Assembly: GCA_037379345.1 (NCBI GenBank)
Contig: CM074514.1
Location: 40,982,001 to 41,046,000 of the forward strand
Source of the DNA: Perna viridis
Lineage: Eukaryota
Reading direction: 5' to 3'
Length of the DNA: 64,000 nt
Shown here: one piece after another, positions 9,600-56,093 of the stretch
Layout: every line of letters starts with the position of its first letter
Position numbering within the stretch: the first letter of the stretch is position 1
Notes under the pieces: model-generated
Seen by the model: only the letters and a program-made list of their open reading frames with translations
Databases searched by the model: none
What the model was told of the DNA's origin: nothing
Made by a program: the position numbers and the translations under genes

Positions 9600-9663
9600 A
9601 TGGGATTTCTTTTAAGTTTCGTAGTTTTGTTTTTCTGTTATTTAGAACTTTGTTTTTCTACAG
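9600..9663 (+). CDS. Gene A exon 1, signal peptide MGFLLSFVVLFFCYLELCFST
   Basis: ATG, hydrophobic core, G|gtaagt donor; same 64 nt length as B exon 1. Confidence 0.8.
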
Positions 9664-12600
9664 GTAAGTTTAGAATTTTTCTTCATAAATTTAACCAGAT
9701 GTTCTATTTGCAAAAACTCAAATCACCATGTACATTGTAGTTCGCTGGCTTGACGTCTATTAGTTTAATACCTATACATGAACCTTTCTAACTATAGATG
9801 AAACATGGTCATGTCTTACTTCCCCTGCTCGGGTTTACATCTTTCAGATTATAGTTTTTTAATCAAGTATCTTGTACTCTCTTTAAACCAGCAAACCCCA
9901 TCCCCACCTTGCGATTGCGATTGTGTCTTAGTTAAATACATCCCTACATGTACTAATTCCATATAGTTTACATGTCAACACAGTAATATTTTCAAATATT
10001 TTCCAGAAAGATGTGCTCCTATACGTTATGATATCGCATTTTATTTCAACCGAGATAACCAAGGGAATTCTGGTACATATTACTCAAGACAAAGGAGTTT
10101 TGCATTACGGATCATTGAGAAATTTCCAGTAGGATACATGCAGACCAGATTTGCCGCACATGCGTACGGCGGAAACCATGAAAAATTTTTCGACTTCAAA
10201 ACAAAAACAACTAAAGACGCTGTAATATCAGGAATTCCCTCGAGTATAAAAACGTCAGGTAGTTGGGAAACAAAAGAAAACATTAGAAAAATCTGGAATT
10301 CTATTTTTCTGGAGAGTGAAGGAGATAGAAGTGATGTTCAAAACTACTGTTTTATGTTCTCGTCGGCTGAGACAAATCAAACCTACGCATCTAGGGGTGA
10401 GAAACCAAGCACAATCATTCTGTATTTGATGGACGCTCAGGATTATTTCAATGCTGCTGATTATTCTGATGATAGAATTTCAGAGTTTGCTAATACTTAC
10501 AAAACCATCAGTAACATTTTTTCCGACTCTGAATTCACCACCATTGCCACGGATTTTACCGGTAATGCTGATTTCAGTTGCAAAACAAGTAAGTAAACAA
10601 AGGTTACCGAAGCAGTGACATATCCAGAGGATAAAAGGGGTTGGTACCCCCTTTTTATTGGATATTTTGTCTTCCATGTGTAAAATTGACAAAAAAAAGA
10701 GTAAACAATGTCCAAGCACTCCTTTGTTTCCCGAGGGACCCCGACCTGAAACCCGTCCTTTTTAAAGTTTGGTTCCGCCCCTGACTTGCTTGAAAAAAGT
10801 ATTCTTTCGAGGTAGATATAGCTGGCTTGTATTCGGTCTTTCTTGTTAGTGTTCGTATTCTGTATCGATCTACAGAATAAATCCGAATTCACCGAATTTT
10901 TATAGTTTGTTTTATTGTTATTTTTTTTCACACCACTCTCCCAGGCTAGAGGAGGGATGAGCGCTCACAAACATGTTTAACCCCGTTACGTACTTTATGT
11001 GTCAGTCCCCAGACAAAACATTTAGTCCTGTTGTTGCCGTTGTTCTTTTTATGTATATTTTATGTCGATTTTTTACTTTTATGAATAGTTTCACTTCGTT
11101 TATTTTCGTGTATGTTTACTGAAGATCAAGTAATCCTAAGAGTAAAATTAAATTTGAATACATATATAAATATATGAAGGGAGGTAATAAAAATTTTCCT
11201 GCAGCCGAAGCAGGTGCTTTCGAATATTTCTGGAATGATATACAGGCGCGCATGCTTAGAAGGTGGATTCAGCTTTCGCACTCACTAAAACTGTGATTTT
11301 GTTTCATGAATTCTTATTCTCAAATTCCAATCCCTAAAATGTTCTTGTCTCGTATCTCTTGAACTCTAATTATATTTACACCTTTCTGGTATTAGCCGTT
11401 ATTAGAAACTGAATCGATAAACTCATGGTTATTATGGTTACAGATATTGTCATAATGATTTGTTGTACTGTTATTTATAGGAAAATGAGGGACTTGCACA
11501 TCAAAACGTTTTAGGTATAATACTATTAGCACCTACAATTATACTTTTTTCTTTTTCTTCAACATTTTATCAGAAGAATTAAGGGTATTAAGAGACAAGT
11601 CATAGTTATATATCATTATTATAATAGTTGATTCTTAATTAAAAAATAGAATATTAGCATCCATATTCAAGGCATGTACATGTACATGTACGTGTATACG
11701 TCTACCAATCTAGTGTAAGGGCTCTTTTTATAATAATCTTATTCAATTTGATTTGACGGGCACTTGCCCCCCCTTCTTTTCTTTTTTCCTTTACATCAGA
11801 AAGTGTGTTTAGTGATCTCAGTGTAAGCTAGTCTGATATTGAGAAAAAAATATGATACTGCACCGTGCCAATAGTGAGTGCCAGAATTAATATTCCTCAC
11901 AGAATGTATACAGGCGCGGATCCAAGGACTGGCCTAAATCGGTAAAAAAAAAATCACCACAAGTTTTACCCCATAATATTTTTTGCCTTGCTTTGCACGG
12001 CATTTAATTTAATTTCACGCCCTCCCCCCCTTAAACTCAAACACTGGATCCGCCCCTGGTATACATGTATGTGATTTCTTTTAAAACGAATATTGTGAAG
12101 CCGTCCTATCATCAATCTTTATGAAAGCTTCATGAAGCGACAACAGAGAGAAAACAAAACAACAAAAGTTAATATCTGACTAATTGTTCGCTAACATGAG
12201 GTTCGTTAGTCTGTTTAGGTTACATATACATTGTATTTGTTATGATAAGTGGTAACTATCTTTCTATTGCAGCGTGTGGTGACAATTTCTTCGCGTATGA
12301 CTACCCATCAGAAATAACCACCAATACTGACACAGAAGAAGGTACATGTATCAGTATTAGTTGATTGCATGCGCAGACCTATGAGATGTCAGTTTCACTT
12401 GTCGATCTTATTCCTGCATTTTTTTTTTTTTTAATTTCTTATCCGTACAAACAAAACCTATAAGTCTTCCTAGCTGCTTTTTTTTATCAATACAAAAGTA
12501 CTACAGTTATGATTGTGCCTTAGTTACACAGGTTGTTCACCTCACTATATGTACATGACATGTTTGCACCATTTATCCATTATAGGTATTTAGGGCCGCG

Positions 12601-15600
12601 GAAGGGGATAAATTTGGAAATTTCGAGTGGAAAACAAATGAAGGATAACATTAAGGCGCTTGTAAGCATGAGTTATCCTTCATGCATATTCAAATAGTTT
12701 ATAATGTTTAATTTAATTTTCATATTAAATGATGCATTAAAAGGAAACAAATCAATAAATAAAAAAGCATAAGTTATTCCTGTATGACATGATCCAAAAC
12801 CGTTTTGATGTCATAGAAACTGGTATATCACTTGACAATAAGAAGGGAAATGAAAATTGGTAACTGGAGATATTAACAATAAAAGCTTAATTACAAATGT
12901 ACGTACTGCTATAGAAAAGTACGGGAAAGTTTTACACGAACTAGTCAAAATATTTTTTCACAAAATATCATAGCAAGGAAACAAACACCGGGGGGGGGGG
13001 GGTTAGGACGTCACAAAAGTATTTGAACAATTTCATTGATTATCTTGAGATATCATTGTACATGCAGACATGCCCGAAAAAGTTTTATGCTCAATTATAC
13101 TTATACATTAATTACTTATCATGTATATTTCCGTCACCGTGAACATACACAGTCATGTATTTACATGTATTATTACAGGTAAAATGACGGTTTTGATGGA
13201 TACAGCCTGGGATATATCGTGTTGCGCAGTGGTAAAACAATGGAATTTCTGGGCCAAGGCCAGTGGTGTTCTTAAGATTGGTGTATTTAGGCCAAACGGG
13301 ACAAACTACTATGCTGTTGGTTACAATGAAATTATAATACCAGGTGAGGAAAGGATGTAAAACTCTTCTTGAAACTCACAATTCTCAATCGAAATTTCTC
13401 GGTCATTCCTGATATCATTGCGCTAAAAATAATCTCGTAATCCGATGCAAAAGAAGAAATTACATGTAGCCGGAATAGTGTCCACCAGGTGGCTTTAAAA
13501 ATTTTAGTCAAAGATATCACAAGAAGTAAAGAATAGTATCCTTTTTAAGATTGGAAGAGAGAGTTAACACTTAAAAAATGTAATTCGGTGAGGTAGTTAT
13601 GATTATAATCTTGGAATCGATCGGACAAATTCCAGAAGGTTATTCCGCTTAATGCCGACGAAGTTTTTCTTCTGGGTAACGAGATAAGTTGAATATTTCA
13701 AACTGCACGCAATTTTGACATTTTTTCTTACATTTGTCGTCCATGGCTTTTTTGCAAAAAATGACTTAAAAAAGGTTTACTACCGTTGTACGAAATGTAC
13801 ATGTGTTGTATTGGCATGACGCAGTCGGAACAGCTTCACTCTTTACCCTTAGAATTCAAGGACATGCATGTTTACTGGTCGTAATTAGGTTTGAATTCCC
13901 GATTGCTCAAATACCGATAACTTAGTACATTGTAGCATCCGAAAAATGTGTATCTACATATATAAAAAATGAAACCGCGGTTTATGCTCATGTTGAAAAT
14001 TTTAAGTAAAAAGAACATGATTTAACTGCGTCTACTATCTTCTGTTTTAAGAAGATATACGGTTATAACATGATTGTACTTGTTTTATAATTTGCACATC
14101 TGATACATGTAGAAACTATAATTTACAGATCAGGTTCAATTTTCAACAAAATCCCGTTGGAAGATTTTGAGATATACTATCTTTAAGATTTGCCATGGCT
14201 TCTTTTTTGGGAATTCCTTAAATTTTGAATATAGAAAAAAAAGGTGTCAAATCTTTATATATTCCGGATATTTAGTATACACTACAAGCCCAATATACAA
14301 ATATACATGCATTAGTATCCTTCTTTTACTCATGTGTATGTGTTCATACTTTTTTACAGACTCATCCATTGGTAAAGAAGTGATAGTTGAAAATGTAGAA
14401 GGCGAAAGAATTGCCATTAAAGACGGAGATAAAATAGCTTGGTAAGGATTATGGTACATGTATTTTGTTTTCGGCCACTTCCGCAAACTAATGAAAAAAA
14501 AATAGAATTTGACTATAGAATAAATATTAAATATTGAATAGTAAATTTATTTTTCACAAGTTACAACTACATTGTATTCACGAGACGAAGTCGAGGGCAA
14601 TAGTTGTAACTGAGGGGAAAATAAACTTACTTTTAAGTGTTCAAAACTTAGCCAATCATATTAACAGCAGTGCAAATTTTGCGAAATATAATTACTCTTT
14701 CAGGGAGGGCAAATAGTTAGGAAACTATTGACCAGCCAATAGTCTTTTGGCTCGCAATTTATCAGAAAATGAAAACTACAAATGTATTCACATAAACTTT
14801 GCAAAGAAAAAGTACACTGAGGTATATGTACATGATAATTAGCATTTATTTTGTTTGTCACTGGAAGGAACGCAAATGCAAATGTCATAATGTGTACGCA
14901 ACAGTGCATGCAACAAACTATAAAAAATGTTTTTACGGCCTTTATTCCGGACTTGCGGACCAACATTTTGTCAATATTTATCTCCCGACCTCCACAAGTA
15001 GGGAATAGACAATGAATCATTGTCCAATGAATTGTTGCATTTGTCCGAAAACGTAGTCTTAGACACGGAGCAGTCAGCGGCGTCTCAGGCTATAATTTGA
15101 AACGATGAATGGCTCCAAATCGTTCAGTCGGAAGTGATGTAAATTGGAAACGACGTATGCAGTAAGGAAATGGTTGTTACTTTTAACACAGATACAATGT
15201 ACACGTTGTATGTTATAGAAAGTCTTGAGTATTCCCGTTTAATCGCGACATCAGCACTGTGAATTATGTCATCTGAGTACAAATGGCTGCTACCGTAAGA
15301 ATAGAAAAGGTAGTAGAGGTGCTCATTGCACTGTTGGCAATCAAAACGTTTTAAGTGTATATTAATTGTTGAATTCCAAACGCTTTAAACAAGGTAAGCT
15401 TTGAAAAAAAGAACGTAAATAGAAATTCTCAGGCGTAGTTTAGCTTTAAGTTTTGAGTACAGTGTACACTTGTAGCTGTGTTAAGGGTTTATTAATGCTA
15501 CAGCGGCGGATCCAGAGGGGTGGAAGGGGTTGTCACCTACCTCTTTATTGCAAAACTTGCCATTTACATGTGAAAAATTGACAAAAATGGCAAATAATGT

Positions 15601-18600
15601 CGTAGCACCCCCACCCTTTTCTGAGGGACCTCAGCTTGCACCCCCCCCCTTTTCAAAGTGTCTGGATCCGGCCCTGTTCTACATGTATATTAAGACAGAG
15701 CATTGATCAAATTTTGTACAATCATTAAAATATTTCTATCTGGAAGGCTATATCTTATTAATAACACTTCTGGAAACATCTGATTTTATGATATTTACAC
15801 TATGGAAACACTTCTAGATCATGATAATTTTGTTGGCATTGTTTTACAGTTGATAAGCTGGAAGTGGGCAACATAAGAAGCGGTTTGGTAGTGTACTTAG
15901 CCTCAACAATTATAAAATGCTCCTCATCTATGAAAATTATCATTATAATTATTTATTACAAGAATGGATAATTATGTCACTCCGGTTTTATTTATTCACG
16001 TTCAGTGGGCATTAATTTTAAACAAATATTGACATAACATGGTCTTAACAAGGTTGTATACATGAACATTGATATTTCAGGCATTCATCCGGTCGAAACA
16101 TCATTGCCTATGAGACTTGTACGACTTCGGATCGGTCAGACTGTCCACAGAATACAAAACAATTCTCTCCAGCTACTGACCCACAAGCAGGCGACAACTA
16201 CGACTTATCAACGGCAAATACTTTAACTAACAGGGCATACTCCATCATGTTGACAACTTCTGAAAGTATGTATTTTTAAAGGGATTTTAAGGAACTGTTG
16301 CTTCGACAAGGTGAAGTTGAATTGAACACTTCATATAGAAATCAAAAAGAGCATACCCGTAGACAGGAGGGTTGAGAGAGGGTGACGACGACCCCTCCTT
16401 TTGGAAGAAAACAAATCGTTGAAACTGTTAAAAATGCACTTTTAATTTAAAGTAAAATAACCCTAGTCTTCAGTTTTTGTAGTATTCTAGCACATAGAGT
16501 TGCATAACCTGACCTTTGGTTAAACGCAAAAGAAACAATGCAAATGTTTTGAAAATTTTGTATAGGTTTTCCGGTTATATTTCGAAGGAATCGAAGCATC
16601 CTTGACTGCTTTTGACGTCACTTTTCCAGATTCTGCACAGAGACTAACTTCCAGTGAGAGTGAGACGGAGTTGGAATGGAACACTGAGATTGGTACTACA
16701 GCTATCTTCCTTACTAATACGGATTTGGATGCCTTCGATGAGTTTACATATACCATGACGGAAACATCACCTAGTGGCTCCTCCTCCTACTTTGAACTGA
16801 ACATTCCAAGATGTATGTTATTATTTTATAATGATTATGAGGGCCGGAGCTATTTGTACATTTAATTTCATTAATAATGCATTGTTAGGTTGTTATATTT
16901 ATGTCACCGATGTCTCGACCAAAGAGAATATGCGAGACTTCCTATTGTACATGATGTGCGTCTGCGCTAAAACTTCAAAAACTGCATACTCACTTTGAAC
17001 AGAAACATTTTATTTTGACAGAGAATCGAACACTTAACTCAAAAAATTCTAGAACGAGATTGATACATAGATCGTGAACGTTTTATTTTTTCGCCGTTCT
17101 GTATATGAAAATATGTGTAATTTTATTCGTCTCTGCAAAAGTTGCAATCAGTATATACGTTCTGATAGCTTTCAGTCTGGTTTAAGAATCTCATAAAATG
17201 ATCCATACATGTTTGAGTCAATAAGACAAGTTTAGCTGTCTTCTAGAAAATTACACACGTATTAACTTCTGTGAAATCCTACATGATAACCAGTACTATC
17301 TTCAACAAAAAATAGCCGACGCAATAAAGTTTTGTTCTTTCTATTTATAATTTTCTTCATTTCAATCAGGGAATAACACATAGCACGCAATTTCAATTTT
17401 TGATACTGTTTGTTCGAACGCCACTTACTTATAAGTAATTGTCCAGTCGGGAAACATAATTGAGATCAGTTGATTTGCGTCTCCATGGAAGGGCGTCTTT
17501 TAAGGTCAAAGGTAAAAAGCGAAAGTACACCGACGGCGTCGAAAAAAGAACGGATGTGATAAACGAAACAACTGTACTAGACTAAGTGTTTAACCTTACA
17601 CCCCAAAATACGGCAAATTATTTCGGAGACCATCAAAAGGTCTTTAACAAGTGTAAACATACATGTACCTTTGAGAAAGCTCCAAAATGGCCAACAACAA
17701 AAATAAAAAAATCCCTGGTAACAGATCGTCTCAAATTCCTCAAAATCAAAAGGACGCAAAAGACACATTAGCAGCAAACATCTCCTGGCTTTATGTATGG
17801 ACAGGTGCGTGGAATCTGTGGAGGGTTTAATCTAGCTTTATACGGCCTTCAACATCCCTATTTTTTCCATTTAGATCTTTTTTTTTTTCATTCGCTGTCA
17901 TGCAAGCCTGCTATAATAATTGATCTAACGATACACACATATCTGCTTTTAAGCAAAACTTATGATACATGCATTACTTTACATAACTACTTATAGCATA
18001 TATCATACGTACCATTTTTATTTACATGTACATGTACATTTAGTGCCGAGAAATACAGCTTGTAATGTTAAATATTAAAATATGCAGAAAGTAAATATTT
18101 TAATGGTTACTAAAATGAAAGAAAGTCTATAAAGAATGCACATACATGTATATCTTTCCTGTAGATGAGTCAAATTATATTAGACTGTTAAAAGATTGCA
18201 CTGGCAATTCATTCATGAACATCTGCAATTATTGAATAGTCTTCCTATACAATTTCATCAAAGTTTGTACAATCACATGTACTGTACACGTACAGTAATG
18301 GAGCAGTTACACATACATCTACACGATTTTAACATATAAATTCCTTAAATCAGGCTTACATGTATCTCTCAGTACAGATACATACTGTAATGCACATCTA
18401 CATTTGATGTCGAAATTTAATTTAACGTCATATAAAAAATTATCAAACTTCGCCGTTTCTCACTATGTAATACTTTTCCTCCGTAGATTTGTAGCATGTA
18501 AATAAATGCTTAAAAAGGCCTTTTACATTTGTGCTTTTTAATACAGTAAACTTACCATTTTTATGCCATTGCTTAAAATTAATCATGTTCATAAAATGAG

Positions 18601-21600
18601 AAACGAGTCTTCTTTTACTATAGAGTTGATAAATTTAAGTTAAATACATGTTTTACTGTTACCTTTTGAAAGCTAAAAAAAATGTGGAAGTTAAAAAGGT
18701 TTTGTTTTTTATAACTAGTCCATTTAAGTACATCTCCGTCTGAGAATCAGGAAAAATGTATACATGTATAAGGTGTTGCACATTAAAGACAAAAAACGCA
18801 GAGATTTTATTGCAATTAATTATACCTGATAACCACCAGAAATGAACATCAAAGTTTTTGTAAAATATGATTTTGATAAGTCAAATTTAGTTGAAATGCA
18901 CTACAGAAAAATGGCGGGAAACTTTTTCCGCACTCTTTCCCGATATACCAGTCAAAAATATCTATGTCACAGATGCTTCAGGATAAACTTACATAGCTAT
19001 TTTGTTGTTTTCTATATGTACTCACTAAATTTGGGAAAATGATGTGCCACCCATTGCCTGGTTGTTACACAGAATGGTTCTTCATTAGGAATTGTTTATG
19101 CAACATGCAAGGAATGCCAACAAAGTTCTCTAGCCTATTATACATGTACCTAATTTTCAAAATATAAGAATAGGTTGAAAGACCGATAATTTTACTATTC
19201 CCCTCATAACCAAATGTAAATTAATACATGTAACATAAGGTTTTACATGTATGTCTGTTTCAGTAACGATTGACCTTAAAGCGAAACTTCCACTACAAGA
19301 TAGCGGTCCATATACAATAACTGTTACAAATGTGGATACTTGTGAACATACTTCTAGTGTCACAGTTACCATAGGAACTTACAATGCCGTGAGTACACTA
19401 TTGAGTATACTTACATGTACATGTACACTTGCGAGTACTACAATATGAAAACTTATAATGCCGTGAGTATTACATGTACTACATATACAATGTATACTTA
19501 CATGTACATGTAAGCTATAGTGAGTACCGCTATATTAAAACTTTTAATGCCGTGAGTACTGCATGTGCTACATAATGCCGTGAGTACTATTGAATGTACA
19601 TGTAAAATGTATACTTGCATGAACATATAAGCTATCGTGAGTACTGCAATATTAAAACTTTCAATGCCGTAATTACTACATGTACTACATGTACAATATA
19701 TACTTGCATGTACATTTAAACTGTCGTGGGTTCTACAACACATATAGATGTATTTATTCTATCGTGATTACTGCGGTATGTATACTACACAATATATATC
19801 TGTGCTCATGCTGTATGATTTTGATTTAAGTACGCTTATGCTAATGTTTTGGAGTTTAAATAAGCTAGCAGAGTCATACGTATTTAGATCGGGATGCTGT
19901 TAGTCTGCGAATGAGACTGTGTGTGATTGTTAATGCCCATAAACTTAAAAATATATTATAGTTGCAGTTTTGTATAACACTAATTATAATACTTTTTTTT
20001 CTACGCAGCCACCAATCGTTACAAATTTGCCATACATTTTGGAAATTATTGAGACTACCAGAGAAGTAATTCCATTGTATCAAATCAACGTAATAGATGC
20101 AACAAATGATCCTATATGTTGCACGATGCCCTATTCAATACCAGCCTCGTTCAACTTTGAATTAAGACAATTTAATAATTCAAATGGTAGGTATATGTAC
20201 TGTATAAATGCTTTACGTTCAAAGTATACTGTAAAAATACTATTATTTGGTACAAATATTCTTAGTTAAAGAAGAACTTTCAAATGTCAATTTGCACATG
20301 TACATGTATATTAATCAATTCGTGATATTAAACAACTTCATCATTTAAATCATTTTATTGAAAATTCTTATTTCGCTGGCAAATAAATTTCGTCATTTGC
20401 CTTACCCATTTTTCATATATTTCTTTGACGTATGTAAAACATTTACATGTATAGTATTCATAGAATCAAAGTACTCATGTCCTGAATCAATTTATCTTCG
20501 ATTGTTGCATTTTAACGACTAAAAACATCATCAAATTGCAAAAATATGGATAAGTTAAAAGTAAAGAACTGGGATTGACTTCAAACGTATCTAAACAAAA
20601 AAAGTAGTGTTATAAATGGTTAATATTGAACTCCTTGATTTAAACTCATGTATTTGCCATCGTTCTAGCAGAGTTTTATTTTAATTTGTCTTCGCCGGGC
20701 TTCCGATGTCACGAGGCGGTAACTGTACTAAAAGGTTAAGATTAAGATCAGTCCACAATTTGCTTTCAACTTAGTTGCCAGTTTTTAGTTGTTTGATGCG
20801 GCGTTTTTTTTTCTGTTTTTTTGTTTGTTTTGTTTTTGTTTTTGTTAGATGGATATGGATTAAAATATCTTCTATGAGTGTAAATAATAGAACGTTCTCT
20901 TCCGACTTGTCGGTCTAATGCAAATTAACGCTCCAATATGTAAATGCTACCCTTTTGTGTAAAATGTGGTCCCAAACAAGAGCGGCAAATACATGTACTA
21001 GCTTGATATACTCTTTCTTTGGCGCTAAACATAACATGGTTTATTACGCATCTAAGAATGAAGCATATGTAGGTACAAATGTAACTTGAGTACATCGACA
21101 ATGAACGAGTGAACGATTGGTTTAGTCCTGTATGAAGCTTAGATATGAACAACAGTACTGATAAGGATGGAGTCATTTTTTTTAATTGAGTCGTTGTCAA
21201 TTCTGAATTCAAACCAAATTAATCTGATATTTTGATTGCAGTAAAAGTTATTTACTGGGTTTGTTTGTTGACGTTAATAGCATAATTTTAAATTTGATAT
21301 ATAAGAAATACCTATAAAGGGGACATAAGCCTAAACGGAGGTTTTCAGTGGAACTATCTTCCTGCGGCGGTGTAAGAGATAATAGTAGATGTTAATAGGC
21401 TTTACAAATCGATAGGGACTGGCGACTGCTATATCAATTCTGATCTTCGATCTAAATTGATAAAAAGACATACATGCACATGGATCATAGGGGCGCCTCT
21501 GATGTTTACGACCCCTCCCAACCGCCAATCGCTAATTCTTTGCTCGGTCCTAAAATCAGAAATCTATTTACGTCCCTAACCTGAAATCCTAGGTTTTGTG

Positions 21601-28369: not shown

Positions 28370-28433
28370 ATGGAATATTTATTACGTTACATTGTTCTCC
28401 TCCTCTGTCATGCTGAAATTTTTTACTGTACGG
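28370..28433 (+). CDS. Gene B exon 1, signal peptide MEYLLRYIVLLLCHAEIFYCT
   Basis: ATG directly after tttttacag (an upstream UTR exon is possible); G|gtatgc donor; 64 nt. Confidence 0.75.
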
Positions 28434-40263: not shown

Positions 40264-40269
40264 TTAATT

Positions 40270-44200: not shown

Positions 44201-47200
44201 TTTATTAAGTAGGTTCTTAAACTTCATGTAGTTGAAAAAGGTGCTTAAATAGTATCTTCTCCATAATCTTCGAAACAATACTAGTAAGAGAAATGGGTCG
44301 GTTGTTTAAAGTATCATGATGACTACCTTTACCCTTATAAACAGGGGTAACATAAGGAAGTTTCCAAGCGTGAGTTTTCCGTTTCAAACGAAGAGAGCAA
44401 TTAAAAAGTTTTGTGATCGGTTTAAATAGCCTCAATTTAACCTCTTTCAATACACAAGGTGAAATACCATCTGGACCAGCCCGTTTGTTTTGGTCTAAAA
44501 TCTTCAATTGGTCAAGAACTTCATTTTCATTAATGATAAAACTAAATTAACAGGCTTAAGATCGGTACTATTTAAAAAAATACAAAAAAGTGGACACAGT
44601 TGTATTATTCCTTGATATTTTTAATAATTAGGGGAATTTCCATCAAATTATAGTTGGAAATTCAAACTGTTATTAATAGGTCTTAGTACTATTCAATCAT
44701 TTATACGGTATGCAGATTTATAGTATGCATAGGGTTGGACTGCTTTATGAACATAGGATTGAAAAAATGGAAGCACCAAGGTACATAGCAAGAACTTTTT
44801 ATATATGTAAAAATGTATTAAAGTAAAAAATTCAGCAGTGTGATTTATAAATCTTTCTCCATAAATCAAATTGTCATATGTAAGCTTACTATAATACTTA
44901 CAAATATATCACACAAGTTTCAAGACTAAACAGCTTTGAAGTGACAGATCTGTATTATTTCTTCCAGACACTTACATGTAAAACATATTAAATGTAGTAT
45001 TTTCCTTGTATGAGGGAAATTATGTGGTATGTTTTCCAATTTTTTTAAACAAGTTTCTTTAGGAATATAATAGAATTTCCAAAAGGGAAAACAAAGTATA
45101 TGATAATATGAGGGAAATTGTGTTGTTTGTTTTCCAATTTTTTTAAAACAAAAATTTCTATAGGAATATAATAGAATTTCCAAAAAGGAAAACAAAGTAA
45201 ATGATAAAAATCTAGAAATGGTTGAATCCTATTCTTATTATATTTATATTTTATTTTCTTTTGGTCTGAATTTTTCTTACAATAAATTCTGATTACTAGA
45301 TTGGTAAAACAAATCTGTTCAAATCATCTGAATTTAGGTTTCTGCCTTTAGATGTTGTGATATTTTAGCAGAGGAATGAAACTAATTGATATTTGTGTAT
45401 GTGTGAGAATCATACTTGTGCTACCACCTGCTTTGCTGCTTTTTATTTATTATTTTGAATTTATCAAGGGGCTAGTTTGTATACATAAGTACACTCCCTA
45501 ATTTATCTTAAATTCAAATTAAAAAACAATGTCATGTTTAGTGTGGGGCTAGTTCGACATACATTGCTGTTGGACTCAAACTTCTAAAAAAAAATTGCAA
45601 CGTATCAGACCTCGTGTAGAGTAATACATTTTTTTTTCAATCCAGAATTTCAGGTACAATGAACATTTATAAACTATCAACTTTAAATGACTTCATCATG
45701 CATGGCCATCATCCGAACCTCAGTATCAAGTTTACTAAACTCTTATTAATAAGAGTGACAAGCAAGTCCCTGAATCCGACAAAATTTCAGAAATTTATTT
45801 ATGGCAGATTCGGAATATCTGATATATTAGAAACATATAAAAGAATGCATAATAATTTCAATTTCCTTCCATTTTTTCTTCTTTATATTCACGGATCAAC
45901 TAAATTTATTCAAAGTAAAAGTAAAAGGATCTAGCCAAACGATATTCTTTCTTTCGGATCAGATCAGCTATAAAGTCAGCCTCATAAGAGTGAAGGAATA
46001 GGTCAGCAAGTAAAGGAGCACAATTTGTTCCCATTGGAATGTCGACCGTTTATTGAAAATATATTTGGAAGATGACTTGGAATTATTTCTGACAAAGTAT
46101 GAGGAATCTCTACCAAGAACTATATATTTGTATCTAGGTGTACCATCTTTTTTTTTTGGAAAAAAACAACGATGTATAATGTTTTTAAGTCGGGGTTTTA
46201 ACTGAGTATGGGGAATAGAAGTATACAGTATTGACAATTCATAGTTTTTAATGCTATTATATTCAGATAATAGTCTTGAACTGTTGTCTCCAAAAGATCT
46301 TTCGAATTTTTCAGTATCCACATTGAATTAATACCACTACGGGAGTAACAAGTGTTGTGGTAGGACTGCAGACCCTCTTTGACAGTTGTGAGTATAGACG
46401 TTAAATGTTTTGCAAGAACAGTCAGGTGGTTTAGCCTTGAAGTCCTCAATCTCGAGGTTCTGCAGTAGCCTTTTATAATTGAAAATTTTGGATGCAATGG
46501 GTGAAGTATAGGAATATTAAATAATTGGTATGGATTTGTCTTTGAAATATGGGGGAATTTTGTTGGTAACGTTTTTGTGATGGAGAATGTTAGCCAACTT
46601 AATTGCATCTATACCTTTGTTAACAAACGGTAGTGGAATAAATGATCGTTTTTCTTCATCTTGACTTTTCACACAGACTGGTTTAAACGTCCTTAATGTT
46701 TAAATTTGATAACGATATATACAGTCAGAACTGATTGAATTTAATATTACATTTAATAAATTGAAACTCTCGATATTTTTTAGATGCTCAGACACGAGCA
46801 ACTTAGTATAAATTTATTAAAGTTATTCTCTCTTGCCATTTAGTGATTGTTTGCAAAATTCTTAATCAAAATTGCAATATGTCACAATAATTTTAGATTA
46901 ATAATTAAATATATACTATGACATTTAATCACTTACAGCGTTGTACGTCGACACAGTTACGGTCGTGGATGCTGAATGTCTACACGAGTCTTGGCCAATG
47001 ACAGTTAGTATGTATGGACCACTAGGACCTTCTGGTAACTTCTGCTCTAACGTCATAGTCGCTGTAAGTATAATTCGTTTAAATGAAGCCAAGAGCAAAA
47101 TATAAATGCAAAGAAGAAATTACATTCACTTTTGAATTCTGTGGAGTCAACTTTTACAATGTTTTGTAATTGACAACATGTCGCCACATGGAATGAAAAT

Positions 47201-50200
47201 TGTTTTCTGTTGCCTTTTTTATTGTGAAAAAAGGAAAGAATGCACAGACCCGGCAAACCTGACAAATTTTTAGACCAACGTTTTGGCTCCAAAAGTTGTA
47301 AAATCTCCATGGCTCTACTTCTAATTTGTGGAATATCGTTTTTTGTTTATGTCAATGTGTCATTTTAGTGGATTATGAGCAGGCTATTTTACCTGCAGAC
47401 AATTATCTTTGTAATGACCTATCATTATCATTGATATCTGTTTCGATTTTTATTGATACAGTTAAACTCTACCTAGTTCGTATTGCACGCTACCCATGGC
47501 AAAGTAATGGCTGTTAACACCAGTTAAGGACATGGTAATATTATCTGCAAGGTCGGTATCTGTTACCCGGAAGTACATCACCTTAAATCCGACAGGAGTA
47601 TTCTCTTCTACCTCTGTTTCATTTTGTATGGGAATAATATGCAGCTCTGTGTCTTGAAACAAACACAATGGAATAAATACAATAATTAAAAAAAATCAAA
47701 ATTCATTGAACTAATTATTTGATAGAAAGGCGATTTGATTTTATTGTTATATCGTGAAGATATATTAGAAGTAAATTGTTATGAATCCGATCCTAAAATA
47801 AGAAATAATTATTTCTTCAAATCTCTTCAAATTAAGGAATATTAAGGAAAAGTCGGCCATATGTCATGGGGTACATATATGACATTTATGAAAGGTAAAC
47901 ATACTGTCAGTAGCTGCCAGTTTAAGCGAATACCCTCGATTTGGAACAGTAGTTGCGTTTACGAAATTCAGCGTATCTCCGTCAACAAAAGTATCACGTG
48001 ATATGCGCAGCATTTTGTTGTTTTGTGGACAGTTATCACCCGTGCAATCAGCATGTCCAATAATATTTGCTGCTGACGTGTGCCTTAAATAGTTCAGATA
48101 TTATTTTTTTTTAATTTTAGGGTTAGAGATACATACACTTATTACATAATGTTTGTATATGAGTGTTTATTTATACAACATTTATATGTAGACTTTTCTA
48201 TATTTTTTTACCCGTTTACAGAAAATAAATTGTTTAAGCAGCGAGTACATATGTATTGATCTGTTTACTGAGTTAAATTTACTGATATTAACAGTTGGTA
48301 ATACCTGAATCTTTTTATCTAGATTAATTTACTTTGAAAAATACACAGGAAACACAGAAACAATTCTTACCCCCCTAAGTTTTATTTAAATTCATTTTGC
48401 TTATTTGTTTATTTATATGTATAATATCTTGTCAACTGATTGAGACAAATATCCCTTACTTAGACAAGTGTATTTTAATCACAGATCATTAAACTATTTG
48501 GAACAAATTCATGAAATGACAGAAGGAAATTTGACTTAAACAAAAGTGGACACTTACCCTATCGATGCTTTTAGTCCACGATCAAAGTTTCTAGTTGACT
48601 CTTTGTTCATATAATTTTATGTCAATGCATGTGTTAGTTTGATTATTTCATTTTTCTTGTTGTGTGAGGCTTTATTTTCGTTGTGTATGTAGTGGTTATC
48701 CCCGAATTATGATATTTTTATCATTGTTCGTGTCACGGTTCCATTGATTTACCTTTTGAAAGCAAAGTAAGGTTGAATATGTATTAAGATAACATAGAGA
48801 CAATGGAGGATTCTCTTGTCTACATCTGAGAACAATATGTCATCTATTACATTATGTTTTACAATACATTATCTGAATATAATAGCATATGTTTTTACAA
48901 ACCACCCTAAAAAGTCTCCTTCCACAAATGCTACCCTCTCTGACGCAAGAAGGTTGAACGAAACTGTTTTACCAACGTATGCCTCTGAAATTAAAGATCA
49001 TAATATTAATTAATCATGGAGTTATAAGTTTATTTTTTGCATCTTTAAGATATGCATTTATATGGAATTTTTTTTTTGCTTTGGAATATTACATAAAAAA
49101 TGATGTCAAATGAATATCCCTTAAACTCTAAGAGAATATGAAACCATCTTCATGCTGCTTTTATCATATTCATCTCAACGTCCTAAAACAATGTTGAAAA
49201 TATTTGGAATATTTTTCATATTTTAAACTTTTCGTATTAAAAACTGTATTGTTCAACGATGAAAGTTAATCACTTTACATGTATAAATCATGATACAGAC
49301 ACTGGGTTGAAGAAGGTTCTTCAATATCTAGAACGTCATTTGCCAGTCAACATGCTTAGTTTTTATGCTTTTATGATATTTTGAAGTATATTTCAAATGC
49401 TGATATTTAAAAAAAAACACACTGACCCATCTATTTTTCTTTCAATATTGTTTTAGCGTAAAAGACCTTTGAAAAGATACAACCCTTAGAGACCCATGTT
49501 ACTATCAACAAGAGCACTTAACATCCTTAAAATTCAAAATTAAAACTCACCTGGTACAACGATTCGAGTTGATCCTACCAAATAATAGCTGTAGCGGCCA
49601 GTGTTCCGGAAAATCATGACTTCAACGACCCCGTGGTTTACTGCATAAAACTCCCATACTGATGTTGCTCCACAGCATGTCATTTGGTAGGCAGAGTCAG
49701 TCATTAGATATAGATAGCCTTTAATTATTGGACAAACTCAAGCATTTGATGATGCAGGTGATATTCTTATATGTGAAAAGGAGAACAAGTTGCCATACAG
49801 ATCTTTCAAATATCTGATTTATCGAAATGAGTCATAATTAACTACCTTTGCTTCATTGGGCTCCGCCAAAGGCTTAATTGCCCGACCCACTTCTCCCTAT
49901 TTCCACTGATAATCAGCATTTGTCGACCTCATTATCCTTGTGTCCCATCCCATTTTTTATTTCATCATCATCTTATGGTCATTTTATCAACCATTTCATG
50001 TTCGTGGCCTGGATATGACTGGCCATGGAATATTGCTGCTCAGGCGTTACACCCCAATAATCAATCAATCAATCATTGCTTCTTTGTTGAGCGCTTACAG
50101 GGTAAGAAATGATTATTTTTGTGAGTCTAGAATCAACATCAACGACAGTATACATCTTGTATTTTAATATAGTTTTGACACATACAGGCACTTATCCATA

Positions 50201-53200
50201 CCCAGAAGGTAACTGTACATTACATTAAACTTGAGTGGAAATGACAAGTGATTCTAATTCGAATCCGGGTAAATCCGGAATGTGAGCATATATTCCCTCT
50301 GAAGATCCCAAAGTTACATATGATATAGCATATACTAATTCATGATAGACGACATTTAATACCGAGTAAAATAAACTAAATAAAAGTGAACAGTTATTGT
50401 TGTGGTAAGTATTGATGAAAACTCACCAACAACTTCGAATGAAATCTGTGTGACTTCAGATACTGATTTAGTAAATCACCGTAGACAAATTATAAAGAAT
50501 AACAATATTGTTAATAAAATGAATATAGATAGCCCTAAGAAGAAGTTCATTCCTTATCTACATTTATAATAGTATGATCTTTAAATTTTAGACAGGTTTC
50601 TTGGAGTACACGGATTGATGATTTATTTTTGTGTGCAAATTTGTTTACCTGAAGAAGAATCATTGCCGCTTCCAAGATTTTCAGGGGAGTCCAATGCAAA
50701 CACCGATGTGCCACAGACTACAATAAAGATATCTTTTATGTTTTAGTTCATTGTCATATAATAATATAAGGCATGTTTAACCTGTAAAAGGACGGGATTG
50801 TAAGCCAGTAAGGGCTTATTGATTGGTATCAAATATTAAATATCATATGTTGAGAGACGTTTTAGGTCCTAGTGCACCTGGGATGACTTGTTTGTTAGTC
50901 GAGTTGTTCGACTTCCGTATCTGCAACCCGAAATATATATGTATATATATATATAGTAGCAGCTTAATTTCTGTCCTAACGGTATAAACGGTATATCCCT
51001 GAATGTAATTTTATATTTATTCGCGTGATAAGTGTTCGTCGTCTGTAAATCTGCTGCAAGATAAGAAAGTAAAATCTTGTGCAATGATAAAAATAAACCA
51101 CATGTAAACATGTGAACGAAACAAACAAATGGAGACATATCAATATATTAATATTGATTTTACTAAATTAATCATAAGATACTTAGTAATTGAGTAATAG
51201 CGAGGGAAGATTTGCCAAAAATATGGCCTTGTATATTGCACGTGTATATGTATATGATTTAATATACCTTTTATAGACAATAGAATAACACCAAGGTCCT
51301 TACGTAATTTTTTTTTATCGTTTTAGAAAAGACATAACCCATGTAAGCTGTAGTTGTGTTTTTGCTTACACATGGGTTGGGTCTGTATCTTCAATTATGA
51401 TTATATAGTGCTTTAATTAATCCATATTGATTAAATTGTTTCATTTAACGTATTTTCCAACTAAGATACAAAAAGTAAATGGTCAATTCCATAAAAAAGT
51501 AATAATGGGACTGAGAAATGATCGCTATAATGTTTGTCTTTCAGACTTCACATAGACGTTTGATAGATGGACCAGACAGTTCATTTAATGCCGACACACT
51601 GACGCAGAATTTAATGTACCAAGACTGTGAAGCAACAAACCGCATGCAATCCATCCTACCAAGTGGCATTGTTCCTTGACAACAAGATGCTACTTCATCT
51701 TCTATATAAATTCGTTTGCGAATAAACAGTGATTAGGAAAACCATTGTTTTTAAGTTTCCTGTTTTACCTAACTGGCAGCAAATATGCTAAAACCGGGCC
51801 ATCGAGGCGGTTTTTGCAGCGCACAAAATGAGATAAAGTTTTATTAACAGCACCTCATTGCGTTGGTTGGTCGTTATAATAGAAAAAAATATAATGTATA
51901 TACAGTCGAACCTCGATGTGTCGAACTCAGGTTTGTCGAAATCTCGGATAACACGTAATAATTACAAAGTCCCAGCAAAACCTCACTTACTCCGATGCAA
52001 TTTTACCTCGGATGATTCGAACTCGGATTAATTTGAAACCTCGGATAACTCGATGTAATCAATAAATCCCCTCGATAGGACTTCGATGTTAATTAACCCT
52101 GATGTCTCGAAGTCAACTAATTAGTTGGAAAACTGATTGCTTATTACAAACAATTATCAAAGTGTGTTTTAACAATTAGTGTGGCTTTTAAAATTAATTT
52201 GTTCACACTCTTTATGGTTTGATTTGTTTATTTAATATAATATAAAATTGCGCGTGTTGTTAAAAGAAACGAATTGTATTAATAACACGTCGGAATTTAC
52301 ATTAACAGTGATATTGGACATTTTGATATTTTGAAAAAAAAATACAGATGAATTGTAATGGTATCTGACTATTTAATGAAACATCAAACCGACGTAGGGT
52401 ATTTCAACGACTACATTCGTTTCGCTAGTGAATCTGATTTTTTTATTGTAATATTGTAGAGCACATGGTTTGATGATAATCCTGATTGTGAATCAAACAA
52501 AGCAGCATGTTATGAACTATAACGTTTTTGACATAGAAAAAATAAAAAGGAAATTTCACTAAAACACTCGGTGCCATTCAGTATTTCAAACATGATATAC
52601 AACATACAAGAAAATGTTTTCCGATATGAAACGCATGACATAATGGAGCACCGTGTAAAGTGAAGTACATGTACATGTACAAGCATAACAAATAATGTAA
52701 ATACAGAAACAATGATGGACCAAACTAATAGTATTTCCGGTTTATCCTCGACCTCGGATTACTTGAACCTCGGATAACTCGAACATTTTTGCATGGTCCC
52801 TTCGACTTCGACTTAACGAGGTTCGACTGTAGCTCATCTTACTCAATAACATATAACAATATTCTGTCCATCTTGTTTATTTTTGTTTTATATTTTGAAT
52901 GTTGTAAATATAGTTATAAAAGTATCATTTTCAAGCTTGAACTTACAGTAGTTGCACGGAAATCCAGACTGTATCTTGCCGAGAAAGTTGTTCTTTTCAC
53001 CTGCTGTAAATGTGGAAAACGATTCATAGACATTTGCAATACTTCCAAACTCTGATTGTGAGTTTCCTTCGGCCACAAGTAGATATACCCCGTTGTCTTT
53101 CAACTTTTGTGCGGCCTCTTTTGGTTCGTCATCAATGAATATTTTAATGAACCAACCGAAGAAACTGTTATAGGAATATGAGTCATGGGTGACGTACATG

Positions 53201-56093
53201 ATGACGACATCACTAATATCTGATCGCGCACCATTACCTTCGGTGAGGACGTCACTTCTAATAAATTCTAAAGCTGATTTTGGATTTGAAGTAGCAGACG
53301 ATGTCGAAATTCCATTTATAGCTGATTTAATGGCTGACGCCGATGAATATTTATTGAAGCCAAACAAGATACTCGTCGTGGACGACGAAAGTACAGTTGA
53401 AATACGTGTCGCAGTAGGGGAGATACTGAACAGATCCGTTATTTCGTTGAATAATGCTTTGACATTACTAAATCTAGAGTAATCGGTAACATCAATCAAA
53501 AACACAATGTCAAATACTTTTGGGGCACAACCTGAAAACGTACAAAACTATATTTGTTTTTTATATTCATACACGCGCACAAAACTTAAAATTAAAGATA
53601 AAATTTGCATTTATGATAATTCATCCGCTGAAAAATAAAATGCTACTGAAACCTTTAGCATATCTTGAAAATTACTAACGGAAACTCTACCATAAATTTT
53701 ACAGTAAAAATAAAAATACCAAGCAAATACATCAAAGAAAACAAGACGAAAAATCTATCACGAAAACCACCTATACCCACAAAAAGATAAATACTAATTG
53801 TAACTGAAAAGTGTGAGGTTGAAAAGTCTATGATGTAACGAAAGCAATATCACTGTAGTCTTTCCAAAGTTTTTACTTGATAAAAATATCAAAATGCATG
53901 GTAGTCCGTACATTCGCCAAGATTACAAGCTTCTAAGCCTTCGGTACTTCCGTCGCAATCATCACCATTTTCACCTGGAGGAGGGTTGTCACACACACGA
54001 TCTCTGTAACGGGTTCCTGTTCCACAATGAACGGAGCAAGAAGTCCATGGACCCCATTCTCCCCAGTTGCCATGAATAACTTATGTAAAAGAAAACACAA
54101 ATTTAATTGTACAAGGAACAATTTTCATTTATAATATGATTTTAGGCTATGCCTATGATGGACAGAGCTCATTCTTTGTTTACGATGCTCCGCCATGTTG
54201 CTATATGTGAAGTCTCATTTTTTAGGAGAAGTTGTGAGACTTTCCACTGGGAAAATTTAATACATTTCTACGCAGCCATGAATCAAATTCCAAATTATTT
54301 TTTAATAAATAAATATATATAGAATCATATCCATCGGCGTATTAAAAGACAAAACAGCGCCTCCACACTTGCCGATTACTGCCGTGTCTGAAATTTTTGT
54401 TGGAATATGTTTAAGACATAATAATATCTTTTTTTCAAAAAATAGCAACGATACAAATCATATTTTGTAGGTTTCAAACGAAGTACCTTATACTTTATCT
54501 AAACAAATGGGCGGCAATAATATGCCGTCGATATGAGTACAGCAGAGAACAGGTCATTGTAAAGAAATGCAAGCAAACCATGCTTGCACAAAAAGGTATC
54601 GACATTAGCTAAATTAACTTGAGCAAACAATGAATTTTCTTTTTCTGTACTTCTACAGTTGGTCATTCTTTTTTTCATATGTTTTCACATCATTTGCAGG
54701 ACGCTTACCCTACCGGTGCACCTGGTCCATGTTCCCAGTTTTTAGTGGAGTCCGAGTTGCTCATTTACTTTTGTTACTTTGTATGTATGATTTTAGTTAC
54801 TTTATGTTCTTTGTTGTGTATGTCTGTTTTCCATGTCTGGTCTTTGTCCCTGGATTACATTATTTTGGTTACCGCTATAACCTTGGTTCCCTTGATTACT
54901 CTTGCAACGGAACTATTCTGAAATTGTATGTTGCATTGTACGCGAATGCTGCTGCAGCGCAACTTTGTTTATGAGGACTGAAGTTGAATTTTTGAAACGG
55001 TCCATTTACACTCTTTCTGTGTTTTTTTTAGTCTGTATCTGTTTTTTGTATTATTATTTTTTCTATTCTAAAGTTACCTGTTGTAACTTCTATTGTTGTT
55101 GTACTGTCTTGTATTGTTTCAGTAACTGTCGTATCTTCTATTGTTGTGCCATCCGTTTGTATATCACCAGATGGGTCCTTGATTTGACAGATTACTGCAC
55201 AGAAGATAATATTTAAAAAAAATAAAGATACATTGTAAATGCAATAATATAATGTAGAAAGAAGGTGTATTCGTTATTCTAAATTTTTCTATGACGAAAT
55301 GATACATAGTGGTTGTATGATCGGCGTTGGGTATTGCCTTTTTTGTTGACGGCATCAACAGAATAGGTTGGAGGTGTCAACCTATGGTCGATGTTTTCAT
55401 ACCTACAGCCTTACCTTCACTATACTAAAGAAACGTCAATTTTACGTTACTGAAAGACTGAAATAACTCTTGTTTAACAAATTATATGAAATTGTAAAAA
55501 AACAGGTTGAGTGCCAGTCTCTGTAAAGATTGGGCAGTGGGTGGAATATGGCACAAGAAACACCATTTTAAAAGTGTATTGTGACAATTCACACCATCAG
55601 AATGAAATAAAAATACAAGATTACCATTATCATTTTGGTAAAGTGACTCAAAATGTCATTTAAATGCACTTAGAATGACTATTCTAGGAACAGATAACTC
55701 GTCTATAACTTTATATTGAAATATTTTTAGCAAATCCAGTGATGCAGAGATCAAATGGGGATTCTTTCAAATAGAAAATCATAGAGTGAAACAACAAAGT
55801 CAGATCGTTGGGTTTTTTTACTTTTCCCATTTTGCCCGATTCTTTCAAAAACTTACACTAAAAAAATAAAAACTTGTACCATAAACGTACGCGCATTTTT
55901 TATAACCAACAACATTGATTAGTGAACAATTTTTTCGGATTTGATTATAAGTAAAATACCTGATCTTGAAAGCAGTGCACTAAACTAATAATCACGCTTT
56001 TTTTTTACAAGTTTCATATCAAAAAGACAACATCAAGTACTCACCAAATGCAAAAAGAAAAACGCAGACACAACAGGACAAGATGAGATTCAT
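40270..56093 (-). CDS. Gene C (13 exons, 1021 aa): signal peptide - Thr-rich - TSP1 - VWA - CC/W-rich domain - 2 cadherin-like repeats - TM - ~304 aa cytoplasmic tail
   Basis: Exons (minus strand) 56093-56045, 55194-55078, 54079-53912, 53531-52947, 50717-50649, 49718-49551, 48984-48903, 48083-47905, 47652-47473, 47061-46937, 42958-42787, 42313-42152, 41279-40270. GT-AG introns, 3066 nt in frame, core intron phases identical to A and B. Confidence 0.88.
42152..42313 (-). CDS. Gene C exon 12, cadherin-like
   Basis: FSYGDVDSYRLFVCCQD...YTPP|gtatgt. Confidence 0.9.
42787..42958 (-). CDS. Gene C exon 11, cadherin-like
   Basis: PPVVHNLP...TNDPICCTMPY. Confidence 0.9.
43930..44545 (-). mobile_element. 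Decayed non-LTR (CR1/L2-like) reverse transcriptase fragment
   Basis: GPDGISPCVLKE, VTPVYKGKG, RPISLTSIVSKIMEK, QSGFQPGDSTVNQL, SKVFDKVWHRGL; frameshifted; in gene C intron 10. Confidence 0.9.
45009..45206 (+). repeat. ~98 bp direct tandem duplication
   Basis: tatgagggaaatt...ggaaaacaaagta..tgataa twice. Confidence 0.8.
45930..46800 (-). mobile_element. Decayed Penelope-like element RT fragment
   Basis: SGINSMWILKNSKDLLE, LYTSIPH, IPMGTNCAPLLADLFLHSYEA (RT motifs); frameshifts, stops and apparent internal deletions; clade not assigned. Confidence 0.8.
46937..47061 (-). CDS. Gene C exon 10, cadherin-like
   Basis: KLPEGPSGPYILTVIGQDSC...TYNA|gtaagt; 125 nt as in A/B. Confidence 0.88.
47473..47652 (-). 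CDS. Gene C exon 9, cadherin-like
   Basis: EVEENTPVG...VTDTD cadherin motifs; exact donor slightly uncertain. Confidence 0.85.
47905..48083 (-). CDS. Gene C exon 8
   Basis: HTSAANIIGHADC...CPQN...NRGYSLKL aligns to A/B exon 6. Confidence 0.87.
48903..48984 (-). CDS. Gene C exon 7
   Basis: ERVAFVEGDFLGW aligns to ERIAIKDGDKIAW; 82 nt, ends in phase 2. Confidence 0.85.
49551..49718 (-). CDS. Gene C exon 6
   Basis: DSAYQMTCCGATSVWEFYA...YYLVGSTRIVVP aligns to A/B exon 4; gtgagt donor. Confidence 0.88.
49850..50075 (+). mobile_element. 3' part of the same SINE-like element, (ATCA)n tail
   Basis: Reverse-complement match to 26930-27125. Confidence 0.75.
50649..50717 (-). CDS. Gene C exon 5
   Basis: ttgtag/gtaaac; CGTSVFALDSPE aligns to A/B exon 3; 69 nt. 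Confidence 0.82.
51903..52829. mobile_element. Non-autonomous Tc1/mariner (pogo-like) element with TA TSD
   Basis: ta|cagtcgaacctcg...cgaggttcgactg|ta; subterminal ctcggata/tcgaac repeats at both ends; no transposase seen. Confidence 0.85.
52947..53531 (-). CDS. Gene C exon 4, VWA domain with degenerate MIDAS
   Basis: FDIVFLIDVT...TRISTV...FNKYSS...ALEFIR...GARSDISDVVI...AAQKLKDNGV. Confidence 0.92.
53912..54079 (-). CDS. Gene C exon 3, thrombospondin type-1 repeat
   Basis: HGNWGEWGPWTSCSVHCGTGTRYRDRVCDNPPP...CDG...EACNLGE: canonical WxxWxxWxxCSxxCG and RxRxC. Confidence 0.93.
54697..54903 (+). mobile_element. Same repeat family (copy 4)
   Basis: Best-preserved copy; in gene C intron 2. 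Confidence 0.85.
55078..55194 (-). CDS. Gene C exon 2, Thr/acidic mucin-like segment
   Basis: gtgcag/gtaact; VICQIKDPSGDIQTDGTTIEDTTVTETIQDSTTTIEVTT; phase 1-1. Confidence 0.72.
56045..56093 (-). CDS. Gene C exon 1, signal peptide MNLILSCCVCVFLFAF
   Basis: ATG, hydrophobic run, G|gtgagt donor. Confidence 0.72.

Follow-up and report, generated by a model that had tools for sequence, protein, structure and literature searches.

On contig CM074514.1 of the Perna viridis assembly GCA_037379345.1, a stretch of 64,000 nucleotides (positions 40,982,001 to 41,046,000 of the forward strand, or G000:C4:40982001-41046000 in our own coordinates, and hereafter "the window") carries three paralogous genes, A, B, and C, for surface proteins that share a VWA domain, a jelly-roll domain, two extracellular cadherin (EC) repeats, and a hydrophobic helix. 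A and B stop directly after the helix, and C continues into a long cytoplasmic tail. We think it probable that they belong to a small, apparently mussel-only family of type I surface proteins in which the tail is ancestral and was lost in the lineage of A, B, and their Mytilus relatives, that A and B have both been kept, and that the three genes lie side by side because of shared descent. An earlier note on this DNA had recognized a cluster of surface-protein paralogs, some tailed and some tailless, and the gene models described below confirm that the cluster is real.

In the account that we put forward, the ancestral protein would have had a signal peptide, a VWA domain, a jelly-roll domain, two EC repeats whose calcium motifs are degenerate, and a single membrane helix, conserved in its outer half, followed by an acidic cytoplasmic tail of ~270-340 amino acids (aa) with three conserved blocks and no known family. 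C would have retained this tail and gained an N-terminal thrombospondin type 1 (TSP1) repeat, and the lineage of A, B, and the Mytilus proteins would have lost it by a stop directly after the helix, within the same last exon, before this genus and Mytilus split. A and B would be products of a later tandem duplication (synonymous divergence, dS, of ~0.9), both maintained by purifying selection. Functionally, the outermost modules (VWA, jelly-roll, and TSP1 in C) would bind ligands, presented on a short, probably calcium-independent EC stalk. A and B would be membrane-anchored through their helix and would bind ligands outside the cell with no signaling of their own, and C would couple the same type of ectodomain to cytoplasmic partners via its conserved tail blocks. 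The adjacency of the three genes would then not reflect a dedicated paired-receptor system. The architecture, the pattern of tail loss, the constraint, and the transcripts of both forms in related species are observed directly.

Gene models

The window is part of a 723-Mb, 46-contig assembly and has a GC content of 30-38%. Six-frame translation gave three matching sets of stop-free segments, of which two lie on the plus strand and the third on the minus strand, and their exons were paired one to one using BLASTN (region A against region B) and TBLASTX (A and B against region C). Exon boundaries were set by hand at canonical AG/GT sites and the joined frames were checked to be open. Database searches with A, B, and C were conducted exon by exon, the spliced models being used only for frame checks, alignment, the ratio of nonsynonymous to synonymous substitution rates (dN/dS), and the tree. 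In the hand-built models (Table 1) every intron of the three genes is GT-AG, and the exons that they have in common show the intron phases 1,1,1,1,2,1,1,0,1,1. Three VWA paralogs with common intron phases were what the earlier note had described, and its start codons, at 9600 and 56093, are correct. Its core layout for C is also right; the extra TSP1 exon, and the absence from C of the 69-nt exon 3 of A and B, had been overlooked. It should be noted that the model of gene C may have further small exons between the signal-peptide exon and the TSP1 exon. At the protein level, identity is 80% between A and B, 36% between A and C, and 35% between B and C. Genes B and C are convergent, with stop codons 1.3 kb apart.

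Presence and loss of the cytoplasmic tail

Both A and B terminate with ...VFWF and a stop codon, flush with a hydrophobic run of 27 residues. The claim that they stop exactly where the membrane segment ends thus holds, as TAA follows this run directly, and so does the claim that C continues for ~304 aa (it extends exactly 304 aa past the helix). The tail of C is acidic (21% D+E) and 40-43% identical to that of C2, a second tailed gene in the same genome. Three blocks are common to C, C2, and P0164, a tailed protein from public assemblies: an (F/I)-P-(V/I)-W-R-(S/G)-R end, the sequence F-G-V-E-M-x-x-F-H-Y-G, and a helical Q-K-K-N ... K-W. The three tails are similar at the C-terminus too. No immunoreceptor tyrosine-based inhibitory, switch, or activation motif (ITIM, ITSM, or ITAM) was detected when the tails of C and C2 were scanned for such patterns, and the tail has no NPxY or dileucine motif and no match in Pfam, among PDB sequences, or in the ESM Atlas. 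When the tail exon was used as the query, only unspliced genomic Logan contigs of the same species were recovered, and none in Mytilus data, in a search limited by its length window.

The most conserved exon occurs in five copies in the 723-Mb genome, these being A, B, C, and two at 6.93-6.97 Mb of the same contig (C4), 34 Mb from the cluster and with no tailless neighbor. One of the two, C2, is a complete C-type gene with TSP1. The other, C3 (G000:C4:6930010-6937370; loci L001 and L004), is partial, with several exons undetected and a frameshifted tail that spans two overlapping frames, and probably represents either a pseudogene or a highly diverged copy.

Outside this genome, both forms can be found. 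In P0164 and P0166 (892 aa; from a 90% cluster of ENA/JGI/Logan assemblies, and probably from a mussel), an A-like ectodomain that lacks TSP1 leads into the helix and a tail of ~265 aa. Their transcript (L021) is spliced relative to the genomic contig L022, and the helix, the tail, and the 3' untranslated region (UTR) lie in one last exon. Tailless relatives occur in M. galloprovincialis, M. edulis, and M. californianus, and share 47-50% of their residues with A and B along the full length; the closest named homologs recovered are from Mytilus. The full-length proteins from these three species (P0061, P0151, and P0152) all end at the position at which A and B end, directly after the helix. There is also a Logan contig (L008, from SRR13891811) that, compared with the 29-kb gene of M. 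californianus, represents a spliced Mytilus transcript of exons 4-11. Because this contig carries the stop codon and ~950 nt of contiguous 3' UTR, the Mytilus tailless form is the product of a terminal exon, not an artefact of annotation. No C-like exon was found within 10 kb of the M. californianus tailless gene.

In databases, the Mytilus relatives are named "hypothetical" or "uncharacterized protein LOC127707895," and one is named "INO80E." The last of these (P0151, from M. edulis) has an N-terminal coiled-coil piece fused to it in the gene model, and what remains is a typical tailless member. The predicted isoform P0153 (M. galloprovincialis LOC143045619, isoform X2) is 508 aa long, stops inside the second repeat (EC2), and has no helix, so a secreted form or a model artefact is possible. 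In the M. californianus gene, the intron that follows exon 8 is filled by ~20 tandem copies of a unit of ~83 nt, itself a repeat of the 3' part of this exon (L009:32870-34278).

For the history of the tail, we built a maximum-likelihood tree of eight rows in which P0156, a cadherin-like Mytilus protein, forms a long outgroup branch. Support is 100/100 for A with B, 100/99 for the two Mytilus proteins, 81/90 for these four together, and 86/84 for C with C2; P0155 and P0164 are unresolved near the base. Two lineages that are not part of the tailless clade have homologous tail blocks, so that, in the simplest reading, the tail would be ancestral and would have been lost once, before the split between this genus and Mytilus. 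In the same tree, the separation of tailed from tailless forms predates the divergence from Mytilus. No relic of tail coding sequence was found downstream from A or B.

Comparison of A with B gives a dS of 0.88, an old divergence, and an overall dN/dS of 0.137. By region, the ratio is 0.14 in the VWA domain and 0.08 in the jelly-roll domain; the two EC repeats have 0.14 and 0.07, and the helix exon has 0.067. The signal peptide is the only part in which dN/dS exceeds 0.15. With a dN/dS of 0.14 at a dS of 0.88, A and B are therefore not pseudogenes. Because this is constraint rather than diversification, the suggestion in the earlier note that A and B are "variable" ligand-binding proteins finds no support, there being no sign of diversifying selection. 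Divergence between the two genes is uneven, with a dS of 0.43-0.57 in the EC regions (16630-22458 and 34530-37032) and 1.1-1.4 elsewhere, which may reflect gene conversion between their 3' halves.

Anchoring of the tailless members

The juxtamembrane region and outer helix share a motif, W-F-x-R-A ... S-x-x-P-I-S-x-M-T, that is common to tailed and tailless members (~10/18 positions identical, compared with 35% overall). The core of the A/B helix has no charged residue; the only ones are a D and an R at the outer boundary, and the R is common to C.

It is possible to read the ends of A and B in another way, as a cleaved attachment signal for a glycosylphosphatidylinositol (GPI) anchor, as in T-cadherin and in the VWA-containing alpha2delta subunits of calcium channels. 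Indeed, the T-cadherin analogy that was drawn in the earlier note would in fact point to GPI anchoring, which that note does not mention. Both proteins end where the hydrophobic segment ends, basic stop-transfer residues being absent, and there is a precedent in alpha2delta, which has an extracellular VWA domain and a hydrophobic C-terminus without a cytoplasmic part that was first taken for a transmembrane helix and later shown to be GPI-anchored (PMC6249638). However, the run in A and B is 27 residues long, compared with the usual 15-20 for a GPI signal, and the 14 residues before it have, by eye, no evident small-residue pair at the omega and omega+2 positions (the sole small residue, D, has F at +2). 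In addition, the outer half of the segment shows residue-by-residue homology with the true helix in the tailed C, C2, and P0164, and the constraint on the helix exon (dN/dS 0.067) is tighter than that on a signal for which hydrophobicity alone is required. Because of the length, the lack of an evident omega site, the homology of the outer half, and the tight constraint, we favor a helix as the anchor of A and B, and consider a GPI anchor unlikely.

Modules of the ectodomain

The VWA domains are recognized by Pfam (PF00092) with 42.8 bits in A and 68.4 bits in C, for a gathering cutoff of 23.8, and comparison of the fold gives Z scores of ~12 to the A domains of collagen VI and VWF. Inspection of the alignment found no intact metal ion-dependent adhesion site (MIDAS; DxSxS) in the family members. 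The equivalent residues are N-R-D-N-Q in A and B, D-V-T-D-Y in C, and D-P-T-E-Y in C2, and the motif is likewise lost in P0152 and P0164. The additional exon of C, which has phase 1-1, matches the TSP1 family (PF00090) with 53 bits for a cutoff of 21.6.

The domain that follows, for which the earlier note used the label "CC/W," is ~145 aa long, spans exons 4-6, and has no match in Pfam. Folded alone (from the Mytilus transcript, L008:10-459, using an alignment of 21 rows), it is predicted to form a beta-sandwich with a predicted local distance difference test score (pLDDT) of 76.6 and a predicted template modeling score (pTM) of 0.73. Its best structural matches are middling: a phage tail-tip protein (Z 8.8), the lectin-like domain of Cwp84 (Z 7.5), and a carbohydrate-binding module (CBM) of a carbohydrate esterase (Z 6.9). 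A Foldseek search with the model gave no match below E 0.08, and the ESM Atlas returned only scores below 0.9. As modeled, then, the domain is a lectin/CBM-like jelly-roll sandwich of no assigned family and with no clear solved relative. Because its first exon (…CCG…W.F…G.L.LQVWR…Y.LVG.N) recurs in at least seven further genes on contig C14 (loci L010-L016), where the exon ends identically, the jelly-roll belongs to a broader domain family within this genome. The domain also stands at the head of P0156. A link to the Methyltransf_FA domain, suggested by P0129, found no support in Pfam searches of family members.

The two repeats beside the membrane are real EC folds with degenerate calcium motifs. 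A family profile compared with PDB sequences over the first repeat (EC1) matches CELSR1 (1.6e-5) and cadherin-23 (2.3e-5). In the AlphaFold model of P0152, the Mytilus ortholog, EC1 is poorly modeled (pLDDT <50), and the membrane-proximal repeat matches EC domains of protocadherin-15, CDHR3, and CELSR1 over ~100 residues (Z 13.2-12.5, root-mean-square deviation [rmsd] 2.1-2.5 A); for EC2 and protocadherin-15 the values are Z 13.2 and rmsd 2.2 A over 99 residues. The Pfam cadherin threshold (PF00028) is not reached, the best score being 17.4 bits for one C exon against a cutoff of 28.8, and there is no match at all for the A exons, P0152, or P0164; searching by exon weakens this test for A and C. 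The "cadherin-like" label of the earlier note thus stands as regards profile and predicted fold, and lacks Pfam support, which stays below threshold on single exons. By inspection, the linker between EC1 and EC2 reads (T/S)YN(A/E)PP in all members, in place of the calcium motif DxNDN, and remnants of calcium motifs in EC1 comprise an E-E-N and a DxD-like element.

Table 1. Positions of genes A, B, and C and of their main features in the window
Feature	Positions	Strand	Exons	Remarks
Gene A, tailless, 11 exons, 632 aa	9600..23348	+	9600-9663, 10007-10588, 12273-12341, 13179-13343, 14360-14441, 16081-16265, 16630-16812, 19264-19388, 20009-20186, 22291-22458, 23251-23348	Open frame, GT-AG introns
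A exon 1, start codon and signal peptide	9600..9663	+		ATG at 9600, hydrophobic 21-residue leader, GTAAGT donor, phase 1
A exon 2, VWA without MIDAS motif	10007..10588	+		Pfam VWA 8.6e-11
A exons 4-6, jelly-roll domain	13179..16265	+	13179-13343, 14360-14441, 16081-16265	Homologous domain predicted as beta-sandwich
A exons 7-8, EC1	16630..19388	+		Family profile positions ~379-511 match CELSR1 and cadherin-23 EC repeats
A exons 9-10, EC2	20009..22458	+		Equivalent P0152 residues 487-598 match solved EC domains by fold
A exon 11, juxtamembrane motif, hydrophobic helix, and TAA	23251..23348	+		Frame closes directly past helix; dN/dS versus B 0.067
Gene B, tailless, 11 exons, 632 aa	28370..38930	+	28370-28433, 29384-29965, 30633-30701, 31624-31788, 32642-32723, 33857-34041, 34530-34712, 35216-35340, 36170-36347, 36865-37032, 38833-38930	Exon lengths equal to those of A
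B exon 11, helix and TAA	38833..38930	+		Ends ...VFWF plus stop
Gene C, tailed, 11 exons found, 959 aa	40270..56093	-	56093-56045, 54079-53912, 53531-52947, 49718-49551, 48984-48903, 48083-47905, 47652-47473, 47061-46937, 42958-42787, 42313-42152, 41279-40270	GT-AG introns
C exon 1, start codon and signal peptide	56045..56093	-		ATG at 56093, GTGAGT donor, phase 1
C exon 2, thrombospondin type 1 repeat	53912..54079	-		Pfam TSP_1 4e-14; no counterpart in A or B; present in paralog C2
C exon 3, VWA with degenerate MIDAS	52947..53531	-		Pfam VWA 1.2e-18
C exons 4-6, jelly-roll domain	47905..49718	-		Exon-by-exon homology to A and B, same phases
C exons 7-8, EC1	46937..47652	-		Pfam Cadherin 0.0059, sub-threshold, on 47465-47695; profile match to solved cadherins
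C exons 9-10, EC2	42152..42958	-		Identity with A and B 50-60%; same fold match as A exons 9-10
C exon 11, helix and 304-aa acidic cytoplasmic tail with three conserved blocks	40270..41279	-		40-43% identical to C2 tail; blocks also in P0164

Two kinds of repeated sequence lie among these genes. The large C intron between EC1 and EC2 holds a retroelement (stop-free frames resembling reverse transcriptase, 43874..46608, minus strand) that is outside the gene product. An interspersed repeat with a recurring open frame (…SGVRVAHLLLLLC…) is present at 7420-7665, 21937-22197, 27536-27721, 54618-54971, and 58706-58981, in introns and intergenic sequence and on both strands.

Weighing the account

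The earlier note proposed as a functional reading that A or B sits in one receptor complex with C, with A and B as ligand-binding or decoy partners and C as the signaling subunit. The three genes are indeed neighbors, B and C are convergent with nearby stop codons, and the juxtamembrane/outer-helix motif common to tailed and tailless members could serve helix-helix association; but the ectodomains of A and B are only 35-36% identical to that of C, the split is old, and C has the extra TSP1 repeat. Neither an ITIM nor an ITAM is present in the tail, and the core of the helix is uncharged. The genomic evidence from elsewhere points the same way, given that C2 and C3 are 34 Mb distant with no tailless neighbor, that the vicinity (10 kb) of the M. 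californianus tailless gene has no C-like exon, and that the tail search, limited as noted by its length window, had no match in Mytilus data. We thus find the proposal unsupported and regard such a complex as improbable. A more elaborate version can be imagined in which A or B and C form a heteromeric receptor through the juxtamembrane/helix motif, as an invertebrate counterpart of adaptor-coupled receptors made of VWA, lectin-like, and cadherin modules, and in which the tail is a new signaling module, possibly for self/non-self or settlement recognition in mussels; this we would call a long shot.

We give almost no credence to the idea that A and B are not truly tailless, whether because alternative splicing adds a tail (RefSeq does list several isoforms for the Mytilus genes) or because they are decaying truncated copies, as no GT site within exon 11 comes close to the donor consensus, coding sequence resembling the tail is absent 3' of A or B, a Mytilus transcript and three independent Mytilus gene models share the same stop, and both genes have 11 intact exons with canonical splice sites and a dN/dS of 0.14 at a dS of 0.88, which excludes neutral decay.

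Descent of all three genes from a tailed ancestor, with loss of the tail on the A/B side, is thus the account that we prefer, and some points do weigh against it. The family is apparently restricted to mussels, a statement that depends on word-seeded searches and on VWA-profile searches of limited sensitivity (the HMMER search with the VWA-exon profile was swamped by proteins with multiple VWA domains, and its useful yield was P0061 and a few exon fragments). The tree has eight rows, an unresolved basal position for P0155 and P0164, and a long outgroup, so that ancestry of the tail would rest mainly on the common tail blocks. A terminal hydrophobic stretch with no residues after it may also look like a GPI signal. 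The function proposed for every domain, and for the tail, is suggested by fold or conservation alone. Finally, the sole hint of expression in this species comes from 14 runs guessed to be RNA, in five studies, that contain 18-32% of the words sampled from 36800-42400 and are not assignable to B or C.

If the account is correct, this is an undescribed, apparently mussel-restricted family of adhesion type with an unusual order of modules and a conserved tail of no known family. Bivalve genomes commonly show shuffling of extracellular domains in single lineages, and the family does not by itself touch a long-standing question. It would, however, provide a natural experiment in which the same type of ectodomain has long been kept with and without a tail, so that the role of the tail, and that of a surface protein lacking one, could be tested in bivalves.

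Comparison with known systems

The literature and databases that we searched yielded no name or paper for the VWA/jelly-roll/EC architecture, in agreement with the statement in the earlier note that the combination is not a named family. There are, however, several known systems to which it can be compared. Paired immune receptors (of the KIR, Ly49, SIRP, and PILR type) are similar in that clustered paralogs have long-tailed and tailless members. They differ in having near-identical ectodomains, ITIMs in the long tails, and a charged helix residue that recruits adaptors, none of which was found in A, B, or C.

Among proteins in which VWA and cadherin domains are combined, hedgling, from sponges and cnidarians, was reportedly described by Adamska and colleagues in 2007 as a cadherin of the membrane with a VWA domain in addition. 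Its status as a non-bilaterian cadherin is on record (PMC12549020). Compared by description only, it differs from the mussel family in its numerous EC repeats, its N-terminal hedge domain, and its EGF repeats, and it is not known from bilaterians. The alpha2delta subunits, which are the precedent for a misread C-terminus, have Cache domains, a functional MIDAS, a strong omega site, and a proven GPI anchor, which are not seen in A or B.

Among cadherins, T-cadherin and the Mytilus cluster of P0156 (cadherin-23-like/protocadherin-like) resemble the family in having EC-fold repeats (two in our proteins) by the membrane and in occurring in tailed and tailless forms. In the case of P0156 the similarity extends to sequence, as residues 309-590 of A align with its jelly-roll domain and first two repeats with 28% identity (E 1e-19); P0156 continues with Pfam-positive cadherin repeats. 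In contrast to cadherins, the family has only two repeats, DxNDN is replaced, a VWA domain and a jelly-roll domain are placed on top, and the tail has neither similarity to catenin-binding regions nor a Pfam match.

In overall plan, the family resembles the anthrax toxin receptors ANTXR1/TEM8 and ANTXR2/CMG2, which also have a signal peptide, a VWA domain, a beta-sandwich stalk, a single helix, and a long tail, and natural variants of the ANTXR family differ in the tail. The stalk of the mussel proteins consists of a jelly-roll domain and two EC repeats, as opposed to one Ig-like domain, and the MIDAS is lost in A and B. Pfam Anth_Ig and Ant_C gave no match at E up to 1 in P0061, P0152, P0164, or the C exons. 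The family is not a member of the ANTXR group, and at most may work as ANTXR proteins do.

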